A DNA stretch of 64,000 nt from the sequence record PQ471516.1; one strand, written 5' to 3'. The notes under the pieces were generated by a model. That model saw nothing but the letters and a program-made list of their open reading frames with translations, ran no database searches and was not told the origin of the DNA. The translations under genes were made by a program, and so were the position numbers. Positions 40-18,962 of this stretch are shown piece after piece; the stretch's first letter is position 1, and each line of letters begins with the position of its first letter.

Positions 40-86
40 GGGCGTAACTATGCACCCGGTGGGCTTGAGTCTTTCTCGACTTGATG
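40..86 (-). ncRNA. Candidate small RNA, CCC-ANN-GGGUGC family, copy A
   Basis: Minus-strand promoter TTGCTT(119-114)-N16-TATAAT(97-92), then AGUC-GAGAAA-GACU and GCCC-ACC-GGGUGC; no ORF follows. Confidence 0.55.
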
Positions 87-186
87 GAACTATTATACAG
101 TACTGAAAAAATAAAGCAATACCATAAACGCAAAAAGTTTTAATTAATTTGCTTGTTATCCTGGGGCGTATTGTGGTACTATAGTT

Positions 187-240
187 CAGTACTGAGAAAG
201 TGCGTTTACCTGCTAGGGTGCGGGAGTGTATCCTTTTTTT
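187..240 (+). ncRNA. Candidate small RNA, family copy B (variant) with terminator-like end
   Basis: TG-extended TACTAT 177-182; GUACU-GAGAA-AGUGC; GGGUGC-GGGAGU-GUAUCC followed by a T tract. Confidence 0.5.
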
Positions 241-254
241 ATATCTTGAATTTT

Positions 255-301
255 GGGCGTAATTCCGCACCCTCTGGGGTTTCCGCTTTCTCGCGTCTAT
301 G
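255..301 (-). ncRNA. Candidate small RNA, family copy C
   Basis: Minus promoter TTGACT(334-329)-N16-TATAAT(312-307); CGC-GAGAAA-GCG; CCC-AGA-GGGUGC. Confidence 0.55.
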
Positions 302-697
302 TAGTAATTATACGCTTTTTCAGGATCAAGTCAATACCTAAAAACAAAATAATTGAAAATAATTTAACGCGTTTAAACGGCCCGTAAAGCCCTGGAATGA
401 TTGGAATGGTGCAAATGTATAGCTTAGGTGTATTAATGCGTTAGAATGCGTCTGAGGCCGTTTTACGGGGTATAGGGATGATTTGGTGGATTGATTCAGT
501 ACTGAATGATAGTACTACTATATAGAAAGATAGTTCCCCTGGATGGTTGCAGTACTGAATGATAGTTCCCCTATATAGAGAGAAAACTATTTTAAAAGTA
601 CATGTAGAAAGTACTTGCAAACTAAGTTTAACGGCGTATAATGTTTTACATCGAGAGCGGGAACACTTCCCGCTACATATTACGAGAGATTAAAACG

Positions 698-1060
698 ATG
701 GCGACTCAAATCACTAAAATTATTGCTAACCTGGTTAACTTCCGCGACGAGATGAAAGATCTTCCGGCTGAAACGGTAAAAATTCACATCGCAGCTTATC
801 GGGAACTTATTGCAATGTTGCCGCTTAAGCGTGAACAATACGCCGCTACCGTGATGCTTGATGCGATGATCCATAAGATGATCGCCAGTGATTTGACGAT
901 GGTTTATCAGTACATGGGCGAAAAATTCTCGGTGTATAGTAAACCAGTACCAGGAATGGAAAGTACAGAAGTATTACACGGTTTAAATTTAAAACAAGAT
1001 GCATGGGATAATATGCCTCGTTTCCTGGTATGGGCTGACAGTGGCAAAATTTACGAATAA
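698..1060 (+). CDS. Hypothetical early protein
   Basis: ORF track 641..1060; start moved to ATG after promoter, hairpin and RBS. Confidence 0.8.
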   Translation: MATQITKIIANLVNFRDEMKDLPAETVKIHIAAYRELIAMLPLKREQYAATVMLDAMIHKMIASDLTMVYQYMGEKFSVYSKPVPGMESTEVLHGLNLKQDAWDNMPRFLVWADSGKIYE

Positions 1061-1154
1061 GTTTAATAAAGTACTTGCATACTAAGTTAAAACAAGTATA
1101 ATACTTTCTATCAGGTGGGGAATAGTTCCCCACTATAATTAAGAGATTAATTTT

Positions 1155-1388
1155 ATGAGTACTATTTTAACTGTTTCTCAATCCGTTGCACTGACTGACC
1201 TATTAAACGCTTTAAGCCGTTGCACTGAGGTTGGCTTGTTTGATGTGGTTGACGTTGCACCGGACGTTATTAATCATTTTTGTGATGCGATGGAAGAATG
1301 TAAGGAAGATGATAGCCGTATGATGGCGGTCGCCTTTGAGGAAGTACAGCCAGGTGAGATCAAAGGTTTACCAGTACTGAAAAAATAG
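1155..1388 (+). CDS. Hypothetical early protein
   Basis: ORF behind own promoter cassette. Confidence 0.8.
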   Translation: MSTILTVSQSVALTDLLNALSRCTEVGLFDVVDVAPDVINHFCDAMEECKEDDSRMMAVAFEEVQPGEIKGLPVLKK

Positions 1389-1470
1389 TACTTGCAAACT
1401 AAGTTTAAAAGCGTATAATACTTTACATCAGGTGGGGAATAGTTCCCCACTATATAAGAGGATTAAAAAA

Positions 1471-1710
1471 ATGGCTAAATCAAAAATGTTCTTAGGTCAC
1501 AAAAACAAAACTCATTGGAATGTAAGCCTTTGGATTAATAACGATGAGTCATTGTACCGGTTGGCCCAGGACTTTATTAACGATAGCACTAATCGCAATG
1601 ATGCGGCCCGTCATATGATGTTATTTTTAGAACAGACTGGACAAGATAAAACACCGGACGGATTCAAATATAGCACTACTGCGATCCGTGCTGCGATGGT
1701 TGGAATGTAA
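1471..1710 (+). CDS. Hypothetical early protein, paralogue of 3871..4110
   Basis: RBS GAGGA; shares GHKNKTHWNVSLWINN and TPDGFKYSTTAIRAAMVGM. Confidence 0.85.
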   Translation: MAKSKMFLGHKNKTHWNVSLWINNDESLYRLAQDFINDSTNRNDAARHMMLFLEQTGQDKTPDGFKYSTTAIRAAMVGM

Positions 1711-1795
1711 TAGAATTTATTTAAAGTACTATCATTTTTTGCGATAGTACTTTATAATAGTGTTTTATTCATACACCAACGATAAGGGTAACAGC

Positions 1796-2062
1796 ATGAA
1801 TATTAAGTATTTTGCGACGCGTGAACAAGCTCGGATCGCCGCACGCCAGGACGGGGCAACGTTTAAAGATATGGGAGCGGGATCGGCAAGTGGTAAACGT
1901 TGGGCCATTGTAAAGCGTAGTACCGCCAGATCATTACAGTACTGGCTATCTGCTTTAAAGCGTCCTGATAGTGTATCGCGTCGAGTGGTAGAAATAAAGC
2001 ACGACCGCAAGGGCAATCGCGTTACCGTGTACCGTACTAAAAAGATAGCAGTACTTGAATAA
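1796..2062 (+). CDS. Basic hypothetical protein, paralogue of 14694..15098
   Basis: Shares K(Y/F)FATREQARI and HDRKGNRVTVY. Confidence 0.8.
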   Translation: MNIKYFATREQARIAARQDGATFKDMGAGSASGKRWAIVKRSTARSLQYWLSALKRPDSVSRRVVEIKHDRKGNRVTVYRTKKIAVLE

Positions 2063-2149
2063 AAAGTACTTGCAAACTAAGTTTAAAAGCGTATAATGTT
2101 TTACATCGAGAGCGGGAATAGTTCCCGCCTATAACCAGGAGTAATAAAA

Positions 2150-2380
2150 ATGGCTAATATGTATATGACCGAAGTTAAAACCGTAAAAGATACTACCACT
2201 AATAAAACTACTTACTTACAGCGGATCTGTGGTGTATGGCAACGTATCAGCAAATCAAAGTACTTTAAATTAACATCATATGCAAACCGTTCGGATTCAT
2301 TCAGTACTGAAATAAAAGGTAATAAAGTACACCAATACGGCACTTATTATTATTACAGCCTGGACGCGATTGCAGTATAA
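2150..2380 (+). CDS. Hypothetical early protein
   Basis: Promoter cassette, RBS AGGAG. Confidence 0.8.
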   Translation: MANMYMTEVKTVKDTTTNKTTYLQRICGVWQRISKSKYFKLTSYANRSDSFSTEIKGNKVHQYGTYYYYSLDAIAV

Positions 2381-2445
2381 GCAGTTTACAAATCTTTACA
2401 ATTGCCGGTATTGACTTATTTTGTCAGTACTGGCATAATGTATTC

Positions 2446-2490
2446 ATTGGCAGATAAGCCGTAGCCCATAGGGTGCGGGAGTGTATCTAT
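2446..2490 (+). ncRNA. Candidate small RNA, family copy D
   Basis: TTGACT 2411-N17-CATAAT 2434; GGC-AGAUAA-GCC; GCCC-AUA-GGGUGC. Confidence 0.55.
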
Positions 2491-2510
2491 AGAAAAAGTA
2501 GTTTATTACA

Positions 2511-2548
2511 GTTACAATTGTGCACCCGGTGGGTTAGCTGTTGTCATG
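2511..2548 (-). ncRNA. Candidate small RNA, family copy E
   Basis: Minus promoter TTGACA(2583-2578)-N17-CATAAT(2560-2555); ACCC-ACC-GGGUGCACAAUUGUAAC. Confidence 0.55.
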
Positions 2549-2664
2549 GGGTATATTATGCCAGTACTTGATAATGCTGTCAATACTTTTTTTTACTATT
2601 CAGTACAGAAAACTATTTTTAAAAAGTACTTGCAAACTATGTTTAAAGGCGTATAATGTTTTAC

Positions 2665-2739
2665 ATCAGGACGGGGAACGAAATAAGTAACTTCCCGTTA
2701 AGTAGCCCAGGAGTAAGGCACACGAAAAACTCCCCTGAT
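2665..2739 (+). ncRNA. Candidate pseudoknotted RNA motif, copy 1
   Basis: Starts right after promoter 2630-2657; AUCAGG/CCUGAU, ACGGG/CCCGU, pseudoknot GCC/GGC plus GGAG/CUCC. Confidence 0.65.
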
Positions 2740-2806
2740 AAAATAGTTTGACAATTGTTTTTAAAAGCGTATAATACTTACATCGATACTGAATGAGGGT
2801 TACAAA

Positions 2807-3418
2807 ATGAAAACTATCACTACTACTACTTTTGTTATGGCTTTTTCTGAACTGACCGCAGAACAACAAGCGGCGGCTATCGAACTGGTTCGGGAACGTG
2901 AAAAAAACTTAAACGATGATTATTTTTCTGAAAGTGAAATTGAATACTATAAAGAAACAGTACTACCGGAATATGGCATAGATGAAGCTGAATTGCAATT
3001 CAGTGGTTTTTGGTCCCAGGGTGACGGTGCATCAATCAGTACTGACCACGTTGACGCAGTGAAGTTTTTACGCAAGATTAAAGCATTAACTAAGTATCGC
3101 TCGATCCGTCACCTGCTGAATGAAGATGATTTGGCGATGAGTGTAAAGCGTTCTCACTCCCACTACTCGCATGAGAATACTGTAAGCGGGTACATTGAAT
3201 CGGCTTACACTGATTTAACCGCAAAACAAGAAACGTTAGTTAATGAGCTTGAGGAACTACTCACTGAAACTATTCGTGAATTATCCCGCAAGTTGTACCG
3301 TGATTTAGAGAATGCATATGAGGATCAATTCACTACTGAAAACATTACGGCACTGATTGAGGGTAACGAATATCAATTCAATGTCATTGATGGTGTAGTA
3401 GAATCAATCGAATATTAA
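2807..3418 (+). CDS. Acidic hypothetical early protein
   Basis: 203-aa ORF, RBS GAGGG, promoter 2748-2775; FSGFWSQGDGAS segment. Confidence 0.85.
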   Translation: MKTITTTTFVMAFSELTAEQQAAAIELVREREKNLNDDYFSESEIEYYKETVLPEYGIDEAELQFSGFWSQGDGASISTDHVDAVKFLRKIKALTKYRSIRHLLNEDDLAMSVKRSHSHYSHENTVSGYIESAYTDLTAKQETLVNELEELLTETIRELSRKLYRDLENAYEDQFTTENITALIEGNEYQFNVIDGVVESIEY

Positions 3419-3511
3419 TTTAAAAAGTACTTGCAAACTAAGTTTAAAGGCGTATAATACTTTATATCGAGGCGGGGAATGGTTCCCCGCTCACACTAAA
3501 AGGGCAACAAA

Positions 3512-3778
3512 ATGAAAACTTTAAATATCACAACTGCACATCAATTGGTTCGGGATGCGATGGATCATGTGCAAGATTTCTTCCCTGATGTAAGTGTAGT
3601 GACTTATGAAAAAGGTACTTGGACTTATTCAACAATCAACGGTTATGAGCCTGATTTTGATGATCTGGAAGAAATGGAATTTAATTTTGATCTGCTGAAT
3701 GATGCCGCCCGTGAAGTGGAAAACGATGTTCAATACATTGATGGAGTAGTCGCACCTGATGCAGTAAAAGGATTATAA
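3512..3778 (+). CDS. Hypothetical early protein
   Basis: Promoter cassette. Confidence 0.8.
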   Translation: MKTLNITTAHQLVRDAMDHVQDFFPDVSVVTYEKGTWTYSTINGYEPDFDDLEEMEFNFDLLNDAAREVENDVQYIDGVVAPDAVKGL

Positions 3779-3870
3779 AATTTAAAAAGTACTTGCATTG
3801 TAGTTAGATTAACGTATAATACTTTATATCGAGGCGGGGAGTGGTTCCCCGCTCAAACGAGGATTAAAAA

Positions 3871-4110
3871 ATGGCTAGTACTAAAACTTACAACGGACAC
3901 AAAAACAAAACTCATTGGAATGTTTCCTTATGGATTAATAACGGTGAGTCATTGTATCGGCTTGCTCAAAGTTGCATTGCACAAAGTAAAACTAAAGATA
4001 TTGCTGCGGAATGTATGTACCGCAGATTAAAAGCCAACGGTACTACAACCACGCCAGACGGCTTTAAGTATAGCACTACTGCGATCCGTGCTGCGATGGT
4101 TGGAATGTAA
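3871..4110 (+). CDS. Hypothetical early protein, paralogue of 1471..1710
   Basis: Near-identical 3' end at DNA level. Confidence 0.85.
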   Translation: MASTKTYNGHKNKTHWNVSLWINNGESLYRLAQSCIAQSKTKDIAAECMYRRLKANGTTTTPDGFKYSTTAIRAAMVGM

Positions 4111-4168
4111 TATTCAGTACTGAATCAATGGCGGGGAATGGTTCCCGCCTTTATTGAGGGTTTATCTA

Positions 4169-4447
4169 ATGAGTAAAGTAATTAACTATACAGTACTAAG
4201 CAAGTCATTGTCTATAAGTGAGTGCACCAATGGTTTTTGGCTGTACGACGAAACGCGTGGCATGAATTTAGCTATGCAGGAGAAAACTGCTGATGCGGCA
4301 TATCTTAAAGCACTGGAATACTACCAGGAACGTTTGAAGGAAGTAGAAAACAATTATCAAAATTTAAAAGAGAAAGTAGATCATTTCGTCGGTCAATTCG
4401 TTGACGATGACGGGCACTACTGCGACCGTTGCGGATCTTACAGTTAA
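4169..4447 (+). CDS. Hypothetical protein with C-terminal CxxC
   Basis: RBS GAGGG; hairpin 4131-4149 upstream. Confidence 0.75.
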   Translation: MSKVINYTVLSKSLSISECTNGFWLYDETRGMNLAMQEKTADAAYLKALEYYQERLKEVENNYQNLKEKVDHFVGQFVDDDGHYCDRCGSYS

Positions 4448-4464
4448 GTACTGAGGATTATCTA

Positions 4465-4668
4465 ATGAGTGATTTAATTGAACGTATCAAAGAGCTTGAA
4501 GAAAAAGAATTGCAGTTGATCGGCTTACAGAATAAAATCTATCATGATTTGGGGAGTTTTATCAATGCCTGGGATAGTGGCGATCCTGATGCGTTACCTG
4601 CTAACCGCACGGCAATGATCAATGATGTGCGTGGTGTCTTTGATTATGTTTTAAAGCAATTAAATTAA
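4465..4668 (+). CDS. Hypothetical protein
   Basis: RBS GAGGA; start adjusted. Confidence 0.75.
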   Translation: MSDLIERIKELEEKELQLIGLQNKIYHDLGSFINAWDSGDPDALPANRTAMINDVRGVFDYVLKQLN

Positions 4669-4755
4669 AAAAAGTACTTGCAATTAGTTTTTAGTACTGT
4701 ATAATGGTTTACATCAAAGGGAGAAATGGTTCTCCCTGGTAATGAGGAAAATACA

Positions 4756-4977
4756 ATGGCTAATATCACTACTCTTTCCCAACTGGAAGCACTGGTTAAA
4801 TCTATGCGGGAACATGCCGACAAAATCGGCGTACAAGATCCAGCCGTTTGCTTTTGCGACGAATTGAATGATGATACCCTGGTAATAGCAGAAGTCCAGG
4901 ACGTTTCTAACTATTCCTCGCGTTACACTGGCGGCGTAGCAAATAAAGGTGACTTCTGTTTATACCTTACAAAATAA
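4756..4977 (+). CDS. Hypothetical early protein
   Basis: Promoter cassette, RBS GAGGA; start adjusted. Confidence 0.8.
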   Translation: MANITTLSQLEALVKSMREHADKIGVQDPAVCFCDELNDDTLVIAEVQDVSNYSSRYTGGVANKGDFCLYLTK

Positions 4978-4982
4978 CAACG

Positions 4983-5012
4983 CGGGGAGATAATAACTCC
5001 CCGTTACTTTTT
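4983..5012 (+). terminator. Intrinsic terminator
   Basis: CGGGGAG-N7-CTCCCCG plus T-rich tail after stop. Confidence 0.6.
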
Positions 5013-5032
5013 CAGTACTGAATCATTTAATA

Positions 5033-5077
5033 GACGGATCTCGGCACCCGGTGGGTTAGTGACTGTTTCGTCTTGAT
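5033..5077 (-). ncRNA. Candidate small RNA, family copy F
   Basis: Minus promoter TTGACA(5112-5107)-N17-CATAAT(5089-5084); GAC-GAAACA-GUC; ACCC-ACC-GGGUGC. Confidence 0.55.
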
Positions 5078-5220
5078 GTAGTAATTATGCCAGTACTGGA
5101 TGCACTTGTCAACAATTATTTTTCAAATACTTTTTATTAAAATACTTGCAATTAGTTTTTAAACGCGTATAATGTTTTGCATAGGGGGAGCGGTTCCCCT
5201 GGTAACTAAGGAATAAGAAA

Positions 5221-5457
5221 ATGGTCGAACAAATCAAATCAACGTCTTCGAATGTAACGGGAACGGTAGCACACTTTACTAGTGATGAATCGCGGGGCGT
5301 TCCCTATTGTGCTGTACATGTAAACACTGAGGGTAACTACTGGTTTACGGTTTACGGATCATATTCATTTGGACGGCCAGGGCATCAAAAAATTCTGGAT
5401 AAAGTACAGCCAACGGGTAAAAATATCACTGCTGAAATGTTTTATAAAAAATCATAA
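5221..5457 (+). CDS. Hypothetical early protein
   Basis: Promoter cassette, RBS AAGGA. Confidence 0.8.
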   Translation: MVEQIKSTSSNVTGTVAHFTSDESRGVPYCAVHVNTEGNYWFTVYGSYSFGRPGHQKILDKVQPTGKNITAEMFYKKS

Positions 5458-5542
5458 AGTACTTGCAATTAGTTTTCAGTACTGTATAATCTTTTACATC
5501 GACACGGGAAAACGGTTTCCCCTGGTAACTAAGGATAATCAA

Positions 5543-5842
5543 ATGAAAGTTGCAATCATCGCCCTGGCTTTATCTGTATCGTCTTTCGCTGTTAACGCTT
5601 CCGTTGATGTACCGCGTGAAAAATTCATTCAGTGCACTGTTGCAATGACTAACGAGGAAACGGCTGAGATCGTTACCAAATCCCTGGAACTGGCCCCTGC
5701 GATGTTTGCCAATGGCCCGTATCATGAAGAAGATGATCAGGGTAGCACGACCATCTATTACGATGCAAAAAGTAAACGCGGTTCAGTTACTGTAATGGAT
5801 ACTGAGAAAGTTACATTCACGGGAGTAATTAATTGTTTTTAA
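5543..5842 (+). CDS. Exported protein with signal peptide
   Basis: MKVAIIALALSVSSFAVNA fits a Sec signal peptide; RBS AAGGA; start adjusted from 5369. Confidence 0.7.
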   Translation: MKVAIIALALSVSSFAVNASVDVPREKFIQCTVAMTNEETAEIVTKSLELAPAMFANGPYHEEDDQGSTTIYYDAKSKRGSVTVMDTEKVTFTGVINCF

Positions 5843-5858
5843 TGAAGTACTGAATCAT

Positions 5859-5887
5859 AAGCCCACTATAAGAAGTGGGCTTTTTTT
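5859..5887 (+). terminator. Intrinsic terminator
   Basis: AAGCCCACT-N6-AGTGGGCTT plus T tract. Confidence 0.8.
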
Positions 5888-5964
5888 ATTGTAGTACTGA
5901 ATACTTTAAAAATAGTTTTGAAATAGTAGTTGACATTACCAGGGAAAGGCGTAGAATGTATTAC

Positions 5965-6027
5965 ATCAGGACGGGGAACACTAAGTAGACCGCCAGTAAG
6001 TCGAACGAAAAACTGGACACGACCTGG
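5965..6027 (+). ncRNA. Candidate pseudoknotted RNA motif, copy 2 (divergent)
   Basis: After promoter 5930-5957; UAAGUA GAC CG CCAG UAA GUC GAACGAAAAA CUGG. Confidence 0.6.
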
Positions 6028-6072: not shown

Positions 6073-6552
6073 ATGGCAAATGTAAAATCATTCTTTAAAG
6101 CACTGGTATCTTCTGACGTATCTATCGCCGCTGAATTGCTGGCTGACCTGGATAATGATACCATGAAAGCAGTACGCAATAATTTTAATATGGCGTACAG
6201 TGCAGCAAAAGAACTGCAAGCCAAAAAGGTAGCAGAACTGGAAGCGGCAAAGGCAGAACGTGAAGCAGAACTGCAAGCAACAATCGAAAGCATCCAGGCG
6301 GCGGTAAGTGGATTGGATATCGAGATCGTAACCGATATGGCACATAAAGCCCTAGCTGCAAAATACGGTGAAGTAAAAGCGGTTAAAGAAAAGAAATGGA
6401 TTCAGGACCGCGTTAACGTAGTACTAGACAACGGGGAAGAATATCTTATTCCTGTACGCGGTAACTGCATTGCCGTAGTACTGGACGCGATTAACTCCAG
6501 TGGTATGACACGCGAGGAATGGATCGAAGCTCATCGCAAAGTTGAAGCATAA
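6073..6552 (+). CDS. H-NS-like protein (coiled coil plus H-NS-type C-terminal domain)
   Basis: Ala/Glu coiled coil; C-terminal NGEEYLIPVRGNCIAVVLDAINSSGMTREEWI aligns without gaps to E. coli H-NS [32 protein letters not shown] (from memory). Confidence 0.55.
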   Translation: MANVKSFFKALVSSDVSIAAELLADLDNDTMKAVRNNFNMAYSAAKELQAKKVAELEAAKAEREAELQATIESIQAAVSGLDIEIVTDMAHKALAAKYGEVKAVKEKKWIQDRVNVVLDNGEEYLIPVRGNCIAVVLDAINSSGMTREEWIEAHRKVEA

Positions 6553-6600: not shown

Positions 6601-6837
6601 GTGTTTATCGTTTACCAGGCCACCAGCACCGCCTAGAAACGATTCTAACGCATTAAACTGATTATCCGATGCATTGCCCTAGCTGGTGGCGTTAAGGCTG
6701 TAAGAACGCGATTGAGAGCGTTTAAAGTATTTTGCAAAAAGTAATAAAAAGTACTTGCACGATTAAGAGATTAGCGTATAATGTTTTACATCGAGAGGGG
6801 GAAACGGTTCTCCTTCCAAATCAAAGGAATCAAAACA

Positions 6838-7065
6838 ATGGCTATTATCATTACTCGCGTATCTGGTACTACTGGCAACGAACAAGTAGTTGCAGTCATT
6901 ACCAACAAGGAAGGTGCGGAATTGCAAAATGCAATGAATACCTGGGCCGTTAATGAGTTCGGTCAGTGGGCAAGTGTAGCATACATTGAAACCTATCAAG
7001 TGCCGTCGATTAGTTTAACTGATTTGGGCGTTGAGCGTATCCTTTGCCTTGATGAATTAAATTAA
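6838..7065 (+). CDS. Hypothetical early protein
   Basis: Promoter cassette; start adjusted. Confidence 0.8.
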   Translation: MAIIITRVSGTTGNEQVVAVITNKEGAELQNAMNTWAVNEFGQWASVAYIETYQVPSISLTDLGVERILCLDELN

Positions 7066-7151
7066 AAAAGTACTTGCAAAGTAAATCGAATAAAGTATAA
7101 TACATTACATCAAGGGGAGAAAATGGTTCTCCCCACTACAAGGAAACTAAA

Positions 7152-7295
7152 ATGAAAACTTGTCAATGTGGTCAGAAATCTATTACGGGTTTAAAGCGGG
7201 GCGTTGCTCTTTGCCAGTACCATTATAATTTACAAGTATGGGGTAAAGAATGGGCCGACCAGGTGGAAGCAATCAAGAAAGCAAAAAGTAAGTAA
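7152..7295 (+). CDS. Small Cys/His protein (47 aa)
   Basis: Own cassette, RBS AAGGA; CQCG...CQYH; below ORF-track cutoff. Confidence 0.7.
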   Translation: MKTCQCGQKSITGLKRGVALCQYHYNLQVWGKEWADQVEAIKKAKSK

Positions 7296-7374
7296 AAATA
7301 TTATCACAGTGCTATTGACATAGTTTGATAGTACTGGCATAATAGATTTTATCAAGACAACTGAGGAAAATAAA

Positions 7375-11238: not shown

Positions 11239-11276
11239 TTGTTGACATACAATGCCAGTACTGGCATAATACTTAC

Positions 11277-11566: not shown

Positions 11567-11824
11567 ATGGCTGTAGGATTTGCGAAGGACGGGGCCGAAC
11601 AAGACGAGATTAACGCAGTGATTCAGGCCGCTGTAAACCACGCTAGAAAGCAAATTAACGCACAAAGAGAATCACTGGTACATTGCCTCGACTGCGGCGA
11701 TAAAATCCCTGAGAATCGACGCCAGGCCGTTATAGGGTGCATGTATTGTATTACTTGCCAGGAGGATCATGATAGTACTTTTAAACGTCAACCGCGTAAT
11801 TGTTGGCATAGATCTATGAGATAA
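11567..11824 (+). CDS. DksA/TraR C4-type zinc finger protein (YbiI-like)
   Basis: CLDCGDKIPENRRQAVIGCMYCITCQ; N-terminus resembles YbiI. Confidence 0.9.
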   Translation: MAVGFAKDGAEQDEINAVIQAAVNHARKQINAQRESLVHCLDCGDKIPENRRQAVIGCMYCITCQEDHDSTFKRQPRNCWHRSMR

Positions 11825-11887
11825 AAAGTATTGACAGTACTGTTAGATAATGTATAATAGTTTACATCTTATCTGAGGATTGAAATC

Positions 11888-12244
11888 ATGGGTATACAAC
11901 ATATCACGCGTACTACTGACAACGGCGAGATCACTGGTTATCAAGTACAGGGCAAAGTAGCACAATTGCAGTACTGGTTTGTTAAACGTGGAATCATTGC
12001 ACCGGATCTTGATTATGACCGTGTAGCGTTTATTGATTCTCTTTATGTTGATCCTGATAGTCGGGGCAATGGTGAAGGTAACGAATTAATGAATGCCTTT
12101 ATCGATGCCGCCGATGATTCAGATTGTATCATCTTAGAATGCGATACGGGAGAAGATAACGCCTTCAATCTTAAAGAATGGTACGAAGGTTTCGGATTCG
12201 AGGTACTGATCGATAGTGAATATCCTATCATGATTTTATCATAG
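11888..12244 (+). CDS. GNAT-family acetyltransferase
   Basis: IDSLYVDPDSRGNGEGNELM acetyl-CoA motif A. Confidence 0.85.
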   Translation: MGIQHITRTTDNGEITGYQVQGKVAQLQYWFVKRGIIAPDLDYDRVAFIDSLYVDPDSRGNGEGNELMNAFIDAADDSDCIILECDTGEDNAFNLKEWYEGFGFEVLIDSEYPIMILS

Positions 12245-12322
12245 TACTTGCATTTAGTTTTCAGTACTGTTATAGTACTTACATCAAGGGGAAACATCTT
12301 CCCCTACTAAGAGGAAATAAAA

Positions 12323-12511
12323 ATGGAAAACTTATCAAGTATTTTAGTACAAGATGATTTCGGTAATCCTGGAAGTGCTATCATTGTTCGGGGCAATAAA
12401 GCAACGTTTGTTATTGCTGGTGGACCCGTACAGCGTAGCATTAAAAATAATGCTGTTACCATTAATAATGTACGCTATCGCTTAGATAAAGAATTAATTC
12501 ATAAACTGTAA
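12323..12511 (+). CDS. Hypothetical early protein
   Basis: Promoter cassette, RBS GAGGA. Confidence 0.8.
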   Translation: MENLSSILVQDDFGNPGSAIIVRGNKATFVIAGGPVQRSIKNNAVTINNVRYRLDKELIHKL

Positions 12512-12596
12512 AAAAGTACTGGACAATAGATTATAGTACTGTATAATAGTTTACATGAAGGGGAGAAATGATTCTCCCCACTAAGAGGAAAGAAAA

Positions 12597-12809
12597 ATGC
12601 AAGGTCAACTAATCGTTCGTAAATGGTCTGATACTAACGAAAAACCGTGGGATGTACAATACATCGCCCCCAATGGTGAATCCAGATATCAACCAGGTGT
12701 AACGCATAGTACTGAGCAATTCGCCGCCGCTCATCGTGAACGTCTGTTACAATCAATGCAGTTCGGTTCCGGTGAAAAATTCATTCAGGATCATTGGCTG
12801 AAAGATTAA
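12597..12809 (+). CDS. Hypothetical early protein
   Basis: Promoter cassette, RBS GAGGA. Confidence 0.8.
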   Translation: MQGQLIVRKWSDTNEKPWDVQYIAPNGESRYQPGVTHSTEQFAAAHRERLLQSMQFGSGEKFIQDHWLKD

Positions 12810-13354
12810 AAAGTACTTGCAATTAGTTTTCAGTACTGTATAATGTTTTACATGAAGGGGAGAATAGTTCTCCCCACTACTAGGAAACAGCATTATGCAC
12901 ATGAATCCGTTTATAGTAGTAATTGCAATCATGATGGCTGTACAGGCCGTGTTAGAATACTTAAGCAAAGCAGGAGTTATCTAAATGATCCAGGTAGAAT
13001 TATCAGTACTCAAAGATCTGTTTTATCGGTTAGGCACTACTGGAGAATACCCGAAAGGTGATACCGCTAAACTATACACTGCATTGGATGTATGGCAACG
13101 TAACGAACTGGCTAACGCCTGGCGTAAAGGTAAATCAGAGGGGATTGCAGCATGAAAGAATTCTTATTCGAAGTAGTGTTTAACCGCGTAGGTGGAAACC
13201 AATTAATTCGCTCAAGTGGTCACAATGTTAATCAAGCGTGGACTAACTTAAAACGAATGTACCCGGACGCGATTACATATCGTAACCCGAAAGAAGTTTA
13301 AAAAGAATTGAAAAAAAGGATTGACTCAGGTCAGTCCTTTTGCTATTATATATG

Positions 13355-13400
13355 CATTGAAACAATCTAGCCCACAGGGTGCATAAATGTATCTATTATA
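13355..13400 (+). ncRNA. Candidate small RNA, family copy I
   Basis: TTGACT 13321-N17-TATTAT 13344; AUUG-AAA-CAAU; GCCC-ACA-GGGUGCAUAAAUGUAUCU. Confidence 0.6.
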
Positions 13401-13484
13401 TGCTGGTGGCTAGTACTATCAAGTACTGAAAACTATTTTTAAAAAGTACTTGCAAAGTATCACGATAAGCGTATAATGTTTTAC

Positions 13485-13557
13485 ATCAGGACGGGGAACG
13501 AAACAAGTAACCCCGTTAAGTAGTCCAGGAGTAAGACATACGAAAACCTCCCCTGAT
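13485..13557 (+). ncRNA. Candidate pseudoknotted RNA motif, copy 3
   Basis: After promoter 13450-13477; AUCAGG/CCUGAU, ACGGGG/CCCCGU, GUC/GAC plus GGAG/CUCC. Confidence 0.65.
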
Positions 13558-13645
13558 AAAATAGTTTGACAATAGTTTTTAGTACTGTATAATATTTTAC
13601 ATCAAGTGGGGAATAGTTCCCCACCTAACAAAGAGAGAAATTAAA

Positions 13646-13921
13646 ATGCGGATTCTACTTACAGCTAACGAAATCGAGCAAGTACTGACTACTAATCTGG
13701 AACAATGGAAACGTGATGCAGATATCCAGGCGGTACAATGGCTTAACGATAAGTTAACGCCGGATGACTTAAGCAAGATTGTAGATCCTCAATTCTACGA
13801 AGATATTCACGACACCGCGTTAAGCGTCGAGGATGTACTTGATAAGCACTTTATTGATACAGATTTACAGGTTTACGGTCGTAAAAACTTTATCACTATT
13901 CACGACATTTACAATACTTAA
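13646..13921 (+). CDS. Hypothetical early protein
   Basis: Promoter cassette. Confidence 0.8.
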   Translation: MRILLTANEIEQVLTTNLEQWKRDADIQAVQWLNDKLTPDDLSKIVDPQFYEDIHDTALSVEDVLDKHFIDTDLQVYGRKNFITIHDIYNT

Positions 13922-14009
13922 GTATTGACAAAGTATCTTAGTACTGTATAATAGTTTACATCAAGTGAGGGGAAACGGTTCCCCTCCTAACAAAGAGAGA
14001 GAAATAAAA

Positions 14010-14192
14010 ATGGCTAAGTGCACTATCTGCAAGAAAGAAATAGTATTAGTTCCAAGTGCCCGTGAACGTGCCGCTCGGTTTGGTGGCAAAGCGTCAGACT
14101 ATACAAAAATGTTTACTGCCCATACAGCTTGCCAGGTAGCAAAACGTTCACAAGAAAGCGTAGAATTAATGCGTAAACTTTCCAAAAAATAA
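14010..14192 (+). CDS. Small putative Zn-binding protein
   Basis: CTIC...HTAC; promoter cassette; start adjusted. Confidence 0.75.
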   Translation: MAKCTICKKEIVLVPSARERAARFGGKASDYTKMFTAHTACQVAKRSQESVELMRKLSKK

Positions 14193-14279
14193 GTATTGAC
14201 AAAGTATCTTAGTACTGTATAATAGTTTACATCAAGCGAGGGGAATGGTTCCCCTCCTAACAAAGAGAGAGAAATAAAA

Positions 14280-14603
14280 ATGGCTATGATCCTTACCCAG
14301 AAAGTAGAACTGAAAATTGTAACCTCCTTTGACATTAAAGTTAATCGGTGGACTGATAGCCACGGCAATACTTACCACTCCTGCTACGTGTCCGCATTGA
14401 TTGGTGATCGCTGGGAAGACCTGGGACACGAAACCTTTACATACGGTTACGGCACACAAGGCGAGTACACGGGTTTAGAAATCATTAAGGAAACTGTAAT
14501 AGGTTTCAACCCGAAAGAGAAAGTACTACACAGAATTGAGAAAGAGATCAACAAAGAAATTACAGTTCGCTACTACGATGTAAAACGTAAGAAAGACATG
14601 TAA
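14280..14603 (+). CDS. Hypothetical protein, paralogue of 7677..8000
   Basis: Shared motifs; cassette nearly identical to the one before 14010. Confidence 0.85.
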   Translation: MAMILTQKVELKIVTSFDIKVNRWTDSHGNTYHSCYVSALIGDRWEDLGHETFTYGYGTQGEYTGLEIIKETVIGFNPKEKVLHRIEKEINKEITVRYYDVKRKKDM

Positions 14604-14693
14604 TAGAATCCATTTAAAGTACTATTTGACATTGCCCAGATAGTACTTTATAATAGACTCTAACTTGTAGTACTAATTAACTTAACTAATAGG

Positions 14694-15098
14694 ATGTACA
14701 CCATGATTACTAAATTCTTCGCTACCCGTGAACAAGCTCGCATCGTTGCCCGTGAGGAAGGTGAAACATTTAAAGACATGGGTAAAGATTCTCCTACTGG
14801 TAAACGCTGGGCGGTACAGTTCAAAGAGATCTCTGATATTGTGAATTCACCTGAGCCTGTACTTACAGCAGCAGAACTAAAGCAAGCTCAAGAACTGGCT
14901 GAAGTACTGAACGCTCAAGATGACTTCTTGAAAGGTTCTGATATTGAAGTTACAGTTAACGCAAATGCATGGACTCACGCGGATCACCTGGCAAACCTGA
15001 AGCGTCCAAGTGAACTGGTTCGCAACCAGAAAGAGATCCGTCATGACCGTAAAGGAAACCGTGTAACAGTATACAGTAAACGCCGCCAGGTTATCTAA
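14694..15098 (+). CDS. Hypothetical protein, paralogue of 1796..2062 with acidic insert
   Basis: Shared N- and C-terminal motifs. Confidence 0.85.
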   Translation: MYTMITKFFATREQARIVAREEGETFKDMGKDSPTGKRWAVQFKEISDIVNSPEPVLTAAELKQAQELAEVLNAQDDFLKGSDIEVTVNANAWTHADHLANLKRPSELVRNQKEIRHDRKGNRVTVYSKRRQVI

Positions 15099-15122
15099 TA
15101 ACTTTGCAGTACTAACCAACAC

Positions 15123-15149
15123 GGCGGGATATCAGTTCCCGCCTTTTTT
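15123..15149 (+). terminator. Intrinsic terminator
   Basis: GGCGGGA-N7-TCCCGCC plus T tract. Confidence 0.7.
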
Positions 15150-15163
15150 ATGGGAGAAACAAA

Positions 15164-15418
15164 ATGATTAAGGTTCAACTATCAAACGATAATGTATTAC
15201 GGGTACACTATAAAGCTCCACAAAGAATCATCACAAAGGCCGTACAGCTTGCTAATGAGTTTATTAATGGTAGTCTATTACCCAGGAAGTTAAGCAACGG
15301 GAAACTACGCGTTATCGATGTAGACACTAACAATAGAATAGTAATTGAGAGTACAGGAAAGATAAACCTTTATGAACACCAACAATATAACAAGAAAATA
15401 AAACTAATATCACGTTGA
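15164..15418 (+). CDS. Possible ParE-like (RelE/ParE fold) protein
   Basis: KA..L...F..G...RKL....VIDV...RIV......LYEHQQYN resembles the ParE-like toxin family pattern (from memory). Confidence 0.45.
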   Translation: MIKVQLSNDNVLRVHYKAPQRIITKAVQLANEFINGSLLPRKLSNGKLRVIDVDTNNRIVIESTGKINLYEHQQYNKKIKLISR

Positions 15419-15471
15419 CAGTACTCAATTGTTTTAGTACTATGTACATATACCAACACGGGAGAAACAAA

Positions 15472-15690
15472 ATGAAATTATCTAAAATCGAAAAGAAAAC
15501 TATTGATGAAGCAGTTAAGCACGGTTATACATTTCGTAATGATTCACATTTTACCAATTTTCAACAAGGGTATCGTACTATTAAAAAACTTATTGACAAA
15601 GGTTTATTAGTTGAAGTCAATAACGGGAACGGTATCGAGTATCAACCAACACAGGACGCATTTTATTTTAAGAAATATAATATTATCTAA
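15472..15690 (+). CDS. Hypothetical early protein
   Basis: Promoter 15415, RBS GGAG; start adjusted. Confidence 0.75.
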   Translation: MKLSKIEKKTIDEAVKHGYTFRNDSHFTNFQQGYRTIKKLIDKGLLVEVNNGNGIEYQPTQDAFYFKKYNII

Positions 15691-15748
15691 TTGACAGTAC
15701 TCAAATGTTTTAGTACTATGTACATATACCAACACGGGGGAAAACAAA

Positions 15749-15991
15749 ATGATTACTTTAGAAAAACGTATCAAAGAAACTACATCGCTGGTGGAACTGT
15801 TAACAGTACTGAAATGTAAAACAACACCATTCAGCACGCCGGACTTTATTAATATGGTTGATGTTAATGGTCGCTATCGCATCACGGTCGAACAAGGAGC
15901 GGCTAAAGTATTCAGTACTAAAAACACTAAGGAAGTGATTCACGCGGTCAGTACTAAAAAAGTAGTTGCCATTTATAGTAAAGTACTGTAA
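15749..15991 (+). CDS. Hypothetical early protein
   Basis: Promoter 15691. Confidence 0.75.
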   Translation: MITLEKRIKETTSLVELLTVLKCKTTPFSTPDFINMVDVNGRYRITVEQGAAKVFSTKNTKEVIHAVSTKKVVAIYSKVL

Positions 15992-16022
15992 GATAGTTTC
16001 ATTAACTCAAGGAGATAACACA

Positions 16023-16607
16023 ATGCGTAACTATACTAAATTCATCCGTACACTTCATGCAATGGAAACTAATAAAGAGATCCTTACAGCTTGTCGGTTA
16101 GCTGGACTGGAGATCGTCGGTGCGGGTTCTTCCCGTATTGTATTCGCTTTGAATGATCGGTTAGTGATTAAGGTCGCAAATTGTGACGCTGGCGTTGAAC
16201 AAAATGAAACTGAATGTAAGGTATGGAATTTTTTAGATTATGACCGTCCACACCTTAAACAGTACTTTGCAAAGGTGCATATGCATTTATGCGATCCTGA
16301 TAATATGTTTATCGTTATGGATCGGTTGAGTACTGCAAGTAAAGGCAGTGTGAAGCACGTTAACGCGTGCAACGAATTAAAGTACAATATTAAACGTAAT
16401 GCTATTGAACGCCAGCACCGCTTTGCTGATGCTCTCAATCACGTTGATGATACATTATCAACACTAACAATCAGAGATATCAGAAAACAGAATATCGGCC
16501 AGGATCGTAATGGACTTATTAAAGTACTTGATTACGGTTTAACCCGCAATATCTGGAATCAGTACTATAAAAAACGTGATGTTAATGCGATAACTATAAC
16601 ACGATAA
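16023..16607 (+). CDS. Protein kinase-like (PKL fold) protein
   Basis: GAGSSR glycine loop, VIKVA, EQNETE, RDIRKQNIG, VLDYG; RBS AAGGAG; start adjusted. Confidence 0.75.
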   Translation: MRNYTKFIRTLHAMETNKEILTACRLAGLEIVGAGSSRIVFALNDRLVIKVANCDAGVEQNETECKVWNFLDYDRPHLKQYFAKVHMHLCDPDNMFIVMDRLSTASKGSVKHVNACNELKYNIKRNAIERQHRFADALNHVDDTLSTLTIRDIRKQNIGQDRNGLIKVLDYGLTRNIWNQYYKKRDVNAITITR

Positions 16608-16659
16608 AAAAGATTAAAAAAGGGATTGACTCCGGTCAGTCCCTTTGCTATTATATATT

Positions 16660-16708
16660 CATTGAGAGATAACTCACTGACCCATAGGGTGCATAAGTGT
16701 ATCTATTA
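16660..16708 (+). ncRNA. Candidate small RNA, family copy J
   Basis: TTGACT 16626-N17-TATTAT 16649; UGAG-AGAUAA-CUCA; ACCC-AUA-GGGUGCAUAAGUGUAUCU. Confidence 0.6.
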
Positions 16709-16829
16709 TATAAGTATTCAGTACTGGAAACTATTTTTAAAAAGTACTTGCATTGTACTTAGAATCAAGTATAATGTTTTATATCGAGAGGGGGAAATGG
16801 TTCTCCCTGGTACATTAAGGAATAAAATC

Positions 16830-17051
16830 ATGACTACAATGACTTGCATTCACGCTTCAAACCTGCTTAATGATGCGGCCTTTAATGTTGAAACAGAATA
16901 TCAATGTTATCGGGATGAAAATAAAAAAGTTTTTGTAGTTGATAATAATGGTTTCCATATTGAATTGCAATCCGGCTTCACTGGCGTTGATGGTAAATCA
17001 GTATGGGGCGTACAGGATGATAAAGGTACATATCATTTTAAACGTAATTAA
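16830..17051 (+). CDS. Hypothetical early protein
   Basis: Promoter cassette, RBS AAGGA; start adjusted. Confidence 0.8.
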   Translation: MTTMTCIHASNLLNDAAFNVETEYQCYRDENKKVFVVDNNGFHIELQSGFTGVDGKSVWGVQDDKGTYHFKRN

Positions 17052-17137
17052 GTATTGACAAAGTATATCAGTACTGTATAATAGTTTACATCAAGGGGAG
17101 AATAGTTCTCCCCACACCAATAAAAGGAAACAAAATT

Positions 17138-17410
17138 ATGTCCAGCTACTCCGCTACTATGATCATCAAAGATATGAACGGTAATCCTACTTCTGCTGGT
17201 GGATCATTTGGAAACATTAACTTAGATGGTCGGTTATCCATGCAATCAGCCATTGATGCAGCGAAAGAAGTTTTTAAGAATGAATGTACTGTAAGCAAGC
17301 TGGATTATATGGGCTTCGCTATCGAGAAAACTAATCGTTTTGTGGACTACAAAAAGCCTATGATGATTGATACTAACCTGAAAGCTAACGAAGTGGAATA
17401 CTTATTATGA
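17138..17410 (+). CDS. Hypothetical early protein
   Basis: Promoter cassette, RBS AAGGA. Confidence 0.8.
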   Translation: MSSYSATMIIKDMNGNPTSAGGSFGNINLDGRLSMQSAIDAAKEVFKNECTVSKLDYMGFAIEKTNRFVDYKKPMMIDTNLKANEVEYLL

Positions 17411-17598
17411 CAGTAGAAGAAGTTAAAAAAGTACTGGCAGTACTACGCTATCATAATCATTGTAAGGTGAAGAATGATCCTGATTATCTTGATTCATCCC
17501 TGGAGGAAGACACCTTAAACGCGATAAGCTATATGCAAACATTAGCAAAGCGTATGACCGAAAAGAATAGGCCGGACTATATAGGAAATAAAATTTAA
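17407..17598 (+). CDS. Hypothetical protein
   Basis: ATGA-coupled to previous ORF. Confidence 0.7.
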   Translation: MTVEEVKKVLAVLRYHNHCKVKNDPDYLDSSLEEDTLNAISYMQTLAKRMTEKNRPDYIGNKI

Positions 17599-17685
17599 AA
17601 AGTACTTGCATTGTAGTTAGATTAACGTATAATGTTTTATATCGAGAGGGGGAAATGGTTTCCCCTCAAGTCCAGGAGATACACC

Positions 17686-17949
17686 ATGAACACTATCGAA
17701 ATCACTATCAATGCACACGTATACGACAACGTAGTACTGCAAACTACTATGACCGCTAATGATACCAGTACTTTGCGGAATACTGTTATTAGTGCCGTAT
17801 GTGCTGCAATCGGTGATGTATCCCTGGAAAATGCAGAACATATCAACAACGGTTTCACTATGTGCAAGCGTGATAACGCAAAACATATCATCGTGGAAGG
17901 TTACGGCGGTGTAGAATTTAATGTTTATATGAAAAAAGTACTTGCATAA
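17686..17949 (+). CDS. Hypothetical early protein
   Basis: Promoter cassette, RBS AGGAG; start adjusted. Confidence 0.8.
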   Translation: MNTIEITINAHVYDNVVLQTTMTANDTSTLRNTVISAVCAAIGDVSLENAEHINNGFTMCKRDNAKHIIVEGYGGVEFNVYMKKVLA

Positions 17950-18016
17950 TAACTAAAACAAAGTATAATGTTTTGCATAGGGGGAGATATCCTCCCCCAC
18001 TAAAAGGAGTAATAAA

Positions 18017-18241
18017 ATGGCTAACTTTGATGAACTGATGCGGGAAGTAGCTAACCTGGCAGAAGAGAAGAAATCATTCGATTCTATCTATAACACCGCT
18101 CACCGTGATTCAGTACTGGCATGTAACCAGGATCAAAAAGATGAACTAATCGCCACCTATCATGAAGCATGGAAGTACTACCGACAATGGGAGAAAGAAG
18201 AAAGTGAGTCTACCATTGACGGCCTCAATAATCTAATCTAA
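18017..18241 (+). CDS. Hypothetical early protein
   Basis: Promoter cassette, RBS AAGGAG. Confidence 0.8.
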   Translation: MANFDELMREVANLAEEKKSFDSIYNTAHRDSVLACNQDQKDELIATYHEAWKYYRQWEKEESESTIDGLNNLI

Positions 18242-18317
18242 AAGTTTTATTTCAGTACTATTGACATAGCTTGATAGTACTGATGTAATAACTTTACTAA
18301 CTACAAGGGGAAACATA

Positions 18318-18575
18318 ATGGAACAGTTCACACAATATCGGGTAAATCATCAAGCTATGGCCTACGTAGAAGACCATAAAACGTTACCAGTACTGCAACC
18401 AGTTAAAGGCCATATCTATCGTGCAATGTCGTGGTGTACGGCTCAGGATGGCTATAAAACCGTAGCCGTTGGTATGTATTGCGGTAATGGTGAATGGTTT
18501 GATCCAAATAATCCGGTAGCCATTGACAGTACTGAACAAATGAAATGGGCCGACTATATCGAGGATATCTCATAA
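18318..18575 (+). CDS. Hypothetical early protein
   Basis: Promoter 18261. Confidence 0.75.
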   Translation: MEQFTQYRVNHQAMAYVEDHKTLPVLQPVKGHIYRAMSWCTAQDGYKTVAVGMYCGNGEWFDPNNPVAIDSTEQMKWADYIEDIS

Positions 18576-18664
18576 AACTATTTGACAGTACTAACCAGTA
18601 ATGTATAATGTTTTACATAGAGCGGGGGAATAGTTCTCCCGCCAATAGTTTGGAGTAAAACATT

Positions 18665-18865
18665 ATGTCTATCGCTATCGCCCTGGTTGAAGTACTGAAA
18701 GAAGCTAAAGCCAACCTTATCGATGTACAGATTAAGGAATTGCAAAACGGCTTAATCGGCTGTACTTGTACCGCTGGTGGAGCGGCAGACTATCGAGAAC
18801 ACGAATCACTCGAATCACTGGTTCGGTATCTTACCATGATCGTTGATGATTGGAGAATCATCTAA
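18665..18865 (+). CDS. Hypothetical early protein
   Basis: Promoter cassette, RBS GGAG. Confidence 0.8.
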   Translation: MSIAIALVEVLKEAKANLIDVQIKELQNGLIGCTCTAGGAADYREHESLESLVRYLTMIVDDWRII

Positions 18866-18921
18866 CAAAAAAGAATAAAAAAAGGGATTGACTCAGGTCA
18901 GTCCCTTTGCTATTATATACG

Positions 18922-18962
18922 CATAGACAAAAACTAGCCCACAGGGTGCATAAGTGTATCCA
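18922..18962 (+). ncRNA. Candidate small RNA, family copy K
   Basis: TTGACT 18888-N17-TATTAT 18911; GCCC-ACA-GGGUGCAUAAGUGUAUC. Confidence 0.6.

Follow-up and report, generated by a model that had tools for sequence, protein, structure and literature searches.

A multi-copy family of promoter-equipped, structured non-coding units in the terminal repeat of Rak2-like jumbo phages

What is made from a strong promoter that is followed by a conserved stretch without an open reading frame (ORF)? This question is raised by the left part of the window, the 64,000-nucleotide stretch of DNA analysed here, which comprises positions 1-64000 of Escherichia phage Turkey5 (PQ471516.1, 351,311 bp), a Rak2-like jumbo phage of the genus Asteriusvirus. 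Eleven short units without an ORF, here called A to K, are dispersed over 19 kb of it, each behind a promoter. A sequence-only reading had described them as ~50-nt RNAs and had proposed that they titrate a host protein. Our comparisons indicate that the unit family is real, common to related phage genera and previously undescribed, and no paper describing the units was found in the literature searched.

Turkey5 and its relatives carry multiple copies of the unit with their promoters, the structure of the promoter-sense RNA is under selection, and the family is restricted to the terminal repeat and conserved across genera. The explanation we tentatively prefer, with a probability of about 0.45, is that the units are trans-acting small non-coding RNA genes of the terminal repeat, whose RNAs would serve as a binding platform for a protein.

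Copies, promoters and confinement to the terminal repeat

A sequence-only covariance model, made from the eleven copies and run over the whole window, returned exactly these copies at 26-47 bits and no twelfth. All are intergenic, and all lie where the sequence-only reading had placed them. The pattern CCCNNNGGGTGC occurs 10 times in the window, compared with 0.02 expected, each time in one of the eleven copies. Copy B carries CCTGCTAGGGTGC in its place. The shared layout consists of the promoter, a CA(T/G) start, a short hairpin or purine-rich stretch, (A/G)CCC, 3-4 bases, GGGTGC, and a tail. Unit transcripts begin with CAT(C/T)(A/G)AG-like letters, as early mRNAs do.

Promoters were scored by mismatches to the sigma-70 hexamers used in the annotation of phage GAP32 and in the promoter scan tool. 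In ten of the eleven window units, the promoter has at most 3.5 mismatches to the two hexamers, a spacer of 16-17 nt, and an end 5-11 nt before the unit; nine of these ten have a TG just upstream of the -10, the exception being copy C. The proposal of a near-consensus sigma-70 promoter for every copy therefore holds for ten copies and fails for B, whose promoter is weak (TACTAT at 177-182 with an upstream TG, and a poor -35). Of the 76 units collected from eight genomes, 70 show 3 or fewer hexamer mismatches, as opposed to 2.1% of random positions in the same loci, and the -10 mostly ends 5 nt ahead of the unit. The promoter sequences are not copies of one another; they belong to different classes. 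In one class (G, I, J and K), the -35 lies within the stem of the terminator hairpin of the upstream gene (9571-9598, 13314-13341, 16619-16646 and 18881-18908, respectively). In another, the spacer contains the palindrome CAGTACTG. Units A-F and H have no promoter stem-loop, and their spacers hold either CAGTACTG or unrelated sequence. Because a promoter, whatever its sequence, is kept at a fixed distance, we argue that the units are transcribed from the strand given here.

No conserved ORF runs across the units. The sole shared start codon is the GTG within GGGTGC. It lacks a Shine-Dalgarno sequence, and the length of the frames that it opens varies from 6 to more than 41 codons, which bears out the earlier claim that neither a ribosome-binding site nor an ORF is present. 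In the deposited annotations, the unit loci are empty, are labelled "hypothetical protein", or have the upstream stem-loop alone marked. Small ORFs annotated across units are probably spurious, for example gp007 of phage CBB (3793-3966 of the CBB piece, minus strand), which overlaps a unit at 3859-3907.

The start of the Turkey5 record is not the physical genome end, as window positions 1-3491 align with positions 1048-4223 of phage fEgEco12. The direct terminal repeat of fEgEco12 is 20,993 bp long, as determined by PhageTerm and restriction digests (PMC13070987), and that of CBB is annotated at 1-22,456, i.e. 22,456 bp (PMC5259590). The corresponding stretch is also annotated as terminal repeat in the records of vB_Ec-M-J, fENko-Kae01 and Muenster. 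Furthermore, a query of the G/I/J/K type gave eight matches in records that include both repeats, and four otherwise. By alignment to these relatives, the Turkey5 repeat (~21 kb) spans from ~1 kb left of window position 1 to ~20.8 kb, so that all eleven units fall inside it. Neither the window from 19 to 64 kb nor the last 50 kb of the Turkey5 record contains a further copy. Taken together, the fEgEco12 alignment, the annotated repeats of relatives and the doubled match counts place the unit family wholly within the long direct terminal repeat. The annotated genes at 1-22 kb are all on the plus strand and almost all small and without an assigned function, and near-consensus sigma-70 promoters occur there by the dozen.

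The family is not a peculiarity of Turkey5. PBECO4, 121Q and further Asteriusvirus jumbo phages are 83.7-96.8% identical to window positions 1-6000, and a model search of the whole TH47 genome (352 kb) found exactly eleven units within 16 kb, each orthologous to a window copy. A 98-nt query matched the unit in phages infecting Klebsiella, Cronobacter, Pectobacterium, Serratia, Erwinia and Salmonella (74-81% identity), and Yersinia phage fHe-Yen9-03 gave a partial match (86.8% over 53% of the query). Each terminal repeat holds 8-13 units in the phages of Klebsiella, Cronobacter, Pectobacterium, Yersinia, Salmonella and Erwinia. Model searches retrieved 13 units in GAP32, 12 in CBB (all within the annotated repeat), 8-10 each in Klebsiella phage OU509535 and in Munch, 10-11 in fHe-Yen9-03, and 5 in a 12-kb piece of Hallingskeid. 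IMG/VR was searched by a pattern scan, which gave 94 stretches, followed by a structured model. The stretches retained came from uncultivated jumbo phages, as contigs 306-366 kb long, and from a small number of short fragments, all of the Rak2-like kind, and none of the 94 held a unit outside Rak2-like phages after the structured model, which rejected about 70 unrelated contigs as chance pattern hits.

RNA structure, orientation and surroundings of the units

For the structural analysis, the 76 units from eight genomes were aligned by fitting them to the structure, and for this reason independent checks matter, here an alignment-free score and RNAalifold. Hairpin 1 consists of a stem of 3-5 bp that closes a loop of 6-8 nt rich in purines. 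Of its alignment cells, 95.8% are paired, compared with 22-53% in controls with slid partners, and all four of its pairs covary (UA, AU, GC, CG, UG); none of 500 shuffles matched the observed covariation. When the best small hairpin with its end 2-7 nt ahead of CCC was sought without any alignment, the score was 8.2, versus 5.1 in shuffles (shuffle maximum 6.3), and RNAalifold predicted the same two hairpins.

The sequence-only reading had noticed that the stem of hairpin 1 changes in compensated fashion while the loop stays purine-rich. This was confirmed and extended to 28 stem types among 114 distinct units, with GAGAAA, AGATAA, GCGAAA and AGAACAA as the commonest loops. The stems of these 114 units contain 15 G-U pairs and no A-C pair, an asymmetry which indicates selection on the promoter-sense RNA and not on duplex DNA. 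About a quarter of the units have no hairpin 1 stem and retain the purine stretch. The stem is absent from E, I and K, for which a weak hairpin had been noted.

Hairpin 2 (CCC-N3-GGGU) is paired in 99% of the cells and nearly invariant. Its outer pair alternates between A-U and G-U, the base 5' of CCC being A or G in 108 of the 114 distinct units, and one or two CCU/AGG double changes were seen; the core is invariant in 111 of the 114. In an alternative fold, hairpin 3, GGGUGC pairs with tail positions 7-12. This pairing, suggested earlier from the window, is supported by 90.6% of cells being paired, compared with 33-58% for slid partners. Five of its six pairs vary one-sidedly, G-U/G-C or U-A/U-G; as all these changes are transitions, they may be taken as supportive, not decisive. 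Hairpins 2 and 3 are mutually exclusive and of near-equal stability (means of -3.9 and -4.1 kcal/mol). A pairing between AGAUA-type loops of hairpin 1 and a UAUCU tail, suspected by eye, was rejected, as the tail is unchanged in units with other loops.

Comparison of orthologous loci in Turkey5 and TH47 adds a second view on hairpin 1. At C, D and J (246-301, 2445-2497 and 16660-16713, against 26633-26682, 24789-24824 and 11978-12021 of the TH47 piece), promoter and tail are near-identical and hairpin 1 is swapped wholesale, in surroundings of about 88-97% identity. At locus J, the full hairpin of one phage is replaced in the other by the stemless form found at I. These replacements seem to indicate gene conversion between units. 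A wholesale swap within near-identical flanks suggests that the hairpin 1 module is exchanged between units or is under diversifying pressure, and either way shape and loop alone are kept.

The orientation of the units is mixed. Of the 76, 24 point against all neighbouring genes, several of the best-scoring ones included; units A, C, E and F are the window's examples. Face-to-face pairs with a co-oriented unit are formed by some of them, with model-hit ends only ~3-14 nt apart, as in B/C and D/E. CBB and GAP32 have three such convergent pairs each, one of them close to the right repeat border, the other two on the side of the left end. Eight units, F included, are solitary and anti-oriented, with a terminator-like hairpin 32-50 nt past the unit, which is the bidirectional terminator of the gene behind and predicts RNAs of ~95-100 nt. 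For these solitary units, a short RNA, or its synthesis, is the only product possible. The genes downstream of co-oriented units have promoters of their own.

Within the window, unit A (32-119, minus strand) has its -35 at 114-119, its -10 at 92-97, the unit proper from 86 to 32 and GGGTGC at 52-57; it heads away from the genes, to the genome-end region free of coding sequences (CDS). Unit B (153-242, plus strand; unit 187-242) ends in hairpin 3 (215-234) followed by seven T, the sole canonical intrinsic terminator among the eleven, and was not recovered by the structured model (R2). It converges with unit C (246-334, minus strand; -35 329-334, -10 307-312, unit 301 to 246), which has a CGC/GCG stem with loop GAGAAA; 3 nt (243-245) separate the model hits, which end at 242 and 246. 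The next pair is formed by D (2411-2497, plus strand; -35 2411-2416, -10 2434-2439, unit 2445-2497, hairpin 1 UGGC/GCCG) and the stemless E (2502-2583, minus strand; -35 2578-2583, -10 2555-2560, unit 2547 to 2502). The solitary F (4982-5112, minus strand; -35 5107-5112, -10 5084-5089, unit 5078 to 5024) runs against the genes and meets a bidirectional terminator hairpin at 5003-4983, for a predicted RNA of ~95-100 nt. In the window, the layout of a terminator-ended small RNA gene is found in B by itself and in F via its neighbour's terminator.

The remaining five units are all on the plus strand. Unit G (9571-9665; -35 9578-9583, -10 9601-9606, unit 9612-9665) has a UGAG/CUCA hairpin 1 and is followed from ~9700 by the next gene's own promoter. 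Unit H (11242-11330; -35 11242-11247, -10 11265-11270, unit 11276-11330) has a GACG/CGUC stem, and I (13314-13402; -35 13321-13326, -10 13344-13349, unit 13356-13402) keeps the purine-rich stretch without a stem. Unit J (16619-16713; -35 16626-16631, -10 16649-16654, unit 16660-16713), again with UGAG/CUCA, is the top-scoring unit of all (65.1 bits), and K (18881-18970; -35 18888-18893, -10 18911-18916, unit 18922-18970) is stemless.

Several other features of the repeat deserve mention. A CDS-free zone of ~2 kb extends across the record start (Turkey5 349,981-351,311 plus window 1-697). It holds units A-C, contains the physical left genome end by alignment to fEgEco12, and includes degenerate 8/16/24-nt periodic repeats of the GGCTAGA(T/C)G type (49768-49840 of the last-50-kb Turkey5 piece); this zone may be a packaging, injection or origin region. 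The RecBCD Chi octamer (as written in PMC7644769) occurs 11 times in the window, compared with 0.48 expected, ten times within the terminal repeat (6620-19003) and once at 61855. Nine of the ten sites in the repeat are on the plus strand, several directly 3' of units I and K, which suggests that the linear DNA end is being shielded from RecBCD. The palindrome CAGTACTG has 55 sites versus 0.86 expected, with 29 at 1-20.1 kb, none at 20.1-34.4 kb and 26 at 34.4-62.7 kb. It is frequently found in early-promoter spacers right before the -10, and also beside terminators, and has the appearance of a target for a DNA-binding regulator or for a modification/restriction function.

Ordinary early mRNAs of the region start with CATC(A/G)(A/G)G-like letters (for example at window 650-690, 1110-1135, 1428-1452 and 2108-2132). 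Ahead of the ribosome-binding site, they have a 5'-untranslated-region hairpin of 7-8 bp, of the GGGGAA-TAG-TTCCCC type, which is a second repeated RNA element here, separate from the units. Among the genes, a small protein with a ParE-like toxin domain (15164-15415; Pfam E = 3e-10) is followed by an annotated transcriptional regulator (15472-15687), and the two may be a toxin-antitoxin-like pair. An RNase H-like match at 6073-6549 is below threshold and too weak for naming (E = 0.0026, 18.4 bits versus a cut-off of 25.8). Two small proteins are DUF7249 paralogues (1471-1707 and 3871-4107). Just before the early region, 14 genes in a row lie on the minus strand (Turkey5 330,035-345,731), of which 12 are annotated as RCC1-like, HERC1-like or Kelch (beta-propeller repeat) proteins and 2 as hypothetical.

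Possible roles of the units

Three observations together suggest the reading of the units as trans-acting RNA genes: the structure of the RNA is under selection, every copy has a promoter, and copies that face no gene are conserved as well. The host sigma-70 RNA polymerase would start at the strong promoter of each unit and yield an RNA with a short 5' lead, hairpin 1, a spacer of ~3 nt and the near-invariant CCC-N3-GGGU hairpin, whose GGGUG may re-pair with a downstream pyrimidine-purine-pyrimidine-C-pyrimidine stretch. With 8-13 genes per repeat and two repeats per packaged genome, the RNAs would be early and abundant; multi-copy dispersal, strong host-type promoters and the location in the repeat all suggest a high early output. 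The RNAs would then act in trans, through a protein that recognises both the loop and the unvarying core. This protein might be a host factor that is titrated, or an early phage protein that is tuned by the RNAs, and a change between the two near-isoenergetic folds may make the invariant GGGUGC accessible or bury it.

A more specific version, close to what the sequence-only reading had proposed, sees in the units multi-gene immediate-early decoy RNAs in the service of takeover or counter-defence, by which an RNA-binding protein of the host (for instance a nuclease, a chaperone or a defence effector) would be saturated. The RNAs would come from the first DNA entering the cell, with the invariant core as bait and hairpin 1 as a scaffold whose stem is free to vary. 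We consider this version rather unlikely. Searches for a known model of such a decoy were negative. Rfam 15 gave no match at gathering thresholds over the 64 kb, including the ToxI/CptI/TenpI antitoxin RNAs, 6S and phage and enterobacterial small RNAs. At relaxed thresholds (E<=1 for 1-20 kb, E<=10 for two small regions holding units), only chance-level matches appeared, none on the unit itself. The window contains no tRNA or tmRNA genes. A blastn search with a 54-nt unit against 5,426 complete E. coli genomes (28 Gb) found nothing at E<=10, this search being insensitive to short partial resemblance.

Several observations weigh against the units being trans-acting RNA genes. The structure-fitted alignment is biased towards the model, and folding energies of single copies are no better than those of shuffles (z-scores -2.1 to +0.5). 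Hairpin 2 is compatible with RNA pairing and, because it is nearly invariant, unproven by covariation, and the one-sided changes in hairpin 3 are transitions throughout, for which mutation bias may be a partial explanation. The Pfam scan covered 50 of the 52 CDS between the first and the last unit; it detected no RNA-binding domain in these 50 proteins, and DksA/TraR, GNAT, ParE-like, kinase-like and DUF hits alone. The literature searched holds no transcriptome or non-coding RNA report on Asteriusvirus, Mimasvirus, Alcyoneusvirus or Eneladusvirus, or on the expression of any Rak2-like phage. Furthermore, at least 5 T within 8 nt after the last hairpin were found in just 12 of 120 units, in the window in B alone, so the discrete ~50-nt size assumed by the sequence-only reading is not established. 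What stands of that interpretation is that the units are ORF-less, promoter-equipped, present in multiple copies and selected for RNA structure, and that they are located where the host sigma-70 polymerase transcribes the genome. Finally, 30 of the 52 co-oriented units reach the next gene's promoter before any terminator, and thus many units may be 5' parts of longer transcripts; a further 18 of the 52 have no detectable terminator.

These last figures, with most units missing a terminator of their own, lead directly to the idea of a cis-acting 5' leader. Here the unit would be the first ~50 nt of longer early transcripts and would act on its own transcript or polymerase, either by making the polymerase resistant to terminators, as the put/nut leader RNAs of lambdoid phages do, or by stabilising the mRNA 5' end. 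Two small hairpins near the 5' end would be in keeping with such a leader, and re-initiation by a modified polymerase would suit G, I, J, K and many units of relatives, which come directly after a strong terminator with the -35 in its stem. We nevertheless hold a leader role to be improbable. The 24 units that face against every neighbouring gene are among the most canonical, the solitary ones are terminated after ~45 nt, and convergent partners are separated by just ~3-14 nt. Downstream genes have strong promoters of their own, and no recognisable antiterminator protein was found among the 50 scanned proteins.

Alternatively, the function could lie in the DNA or in the act of transcription, with the units as insulating promoter/terminator cassettes, as a polymerase sink, or as recombination linkers resembling the promoter-early stem-loops (PeSLs) of T4-type phages, and with CCC-N3-GGG as a small operator palindrome. 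The terminator-in-promoter layout of G, I, J and K fits the PeSL description (PMC2839356), convergent promoter pairs lie near both repeat borders in CBB and GAP32, hairpin 2 is both invariant and palindromic, and the swapping of hairpin 1 segments between loci of close relatives is expected if units recombine. An insulator or polymerase sink, however, needs no conserved transcribed sequence, and PeSLs end in a ribosome-binding site and start codon, which the units do not. The compensated changes of hairpin 1, with G-U but no A-C, speak for selection on one strand of defined polarity. Likewise, A and G 5' of CCC both pair with U in RNA, while G extends no DNA palindrome. A role at the DNA level thus appears somewhat less probable still.

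Far smaller is the chance that the units prime replication in the manner of the promoter-dependent T4 origins, with transcripts that stay hybridised to the DNA past the promoter. Such primers would make sense of strong gene-less promoters, of the G-rich part of the RNA (GGGUGC, in many cases with GGAG or GGGAG after it) before AT-rich DNA, of the position of A-C beside the physical genome end in a CDS-free zone with iteron-like repeats, and of the sub-threshold RNase H-like match in a repeat gene. But 8-13 origins per repeat are implausible, a hybrid-forming primer needs no covarying hairpin with a conserved loop, both orientations and the face-to-face pairs are conserved, and the G-rich extension is present in just about half of the units. 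We disfavour most the notion of decayed leftovers, that is, functionless promoter cassettes after the loss of small early genes. It draws on the region being a mosaic of tiny promoter-plus-gene cassettes and on the mRNA-like 5' letters of the units, but is at odds with number, position, orientation and structure being conserved over six host genera at 74-80% identity, with the near-universal core, and with stems that change by compensation. Each of the other three rivals explains part of the unit anatomy and fails on another part.

Should a host factor prove to be the target of the RNAs, phage takeover would gain an RNA mechanism. Independent of this, the unit family is a clear, statistically solid RNA element that crosses genera, and a candidate for a new Rfam family. 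It is also among the few cases in which a phage gives roughly one in five of a region's strong early promoters to RNAs and not to proteins. Jumbo phages of the Rak2-like kind are often isolated and find use against plant pathogens as well as E. coli, Klebsiella and Salmonella, and their early region is mostly uncharacterised; annotation pipelines leave the unit loci blank or cover them with spurious ORFs. With defined 5' ends and a defined motif, the units offer a handle on the role of the terminal repeat in the first minutes of infection.

Comparison with known systems

RNA anti-CRISPRs and pseudo-ToxI mimics are short phage RNAs with their own promoters that occupy a host protein, and they are recognisable copies of a host RNA, the CRISPR repeat or the ToxI repeat. 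The units differ from such decoys in that no host counterpart was found by the insensitive blastn search and no antitoxin RNA matched in Rfam. Moreover, they do not form a tandem array of the ToxI type, being dispersed over 19 kb with promoters of their own. In lambdoid phages, the nut/put leader RNAs exert their effect in cis, on transcripts running on into genes. In layout, they resemble the units in having small hairpins near the 5' end of early transcripts, one with a purine-rich loop, in a region crowded with terminators. The difference is that 24 of the 76 units have no gene ahead and that no homologous protein partner was found; a common orientation upstream of genes is seen for the co-oriented subset, not overall. 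At the R-loop origins of T4, as with the units, the short transcript of a promoter is the product, and not a protein. A genome has few such origins, however, and no conserved structure is common to their RNAs, whereas the units are many and structured.

The PeSL cassettes of the T4-type phages RB49 and phi1 (PMC2839356) come close in several respects. In a PeSL, a strong sigma-70 promoter, AT-rich in its upstream part, is combined with a terminator stem-loop overlapping the -35 or -10; the cassettes are repeated many times among small early genes without known function, and they are likely sites of exchange between loci. The units share the strong promoter with its AT-rich upstream part, the repetition among small early genes and the likely exchange between loci. 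A PeSL, however, leads up to a gene and includes its Shine-Dalgarno sequence and start codon, where the units have a conserved, structured, ORF-less segment of ~50 nt. In addition, one third of the units run against the genes, and the promoter stem-loop is present in part of them only, here in G, I, J and K.

A further parallel comes from the Pseudomonas jumbo phage PA5oct, a distant relative, whose terminal repeat is the most strongly transcribed early region and gives rise to ORF-less transcripts that are among the most abundant phage RNAs (PMC7318152). Homology was rejected, as the best hit reached 10 bits (E = 0.12) and covered a tail fragment only, and the PA5oct ncRNA001 and ncRNA002 are single-copy and 236 and 451 nt long. 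Still, like the units, they are ORF-less and belong to a jumbo phage dependent on the host RNA polymerase, where they lie in the long direct terminal repeat, and they are highly expressed. Phage small RNAs with their own promoters are an already known kind. New are the unit family itself, the number of its copies, the mixture of orientations with units facing each other in pairs, and the restriction to the terminal repeat.

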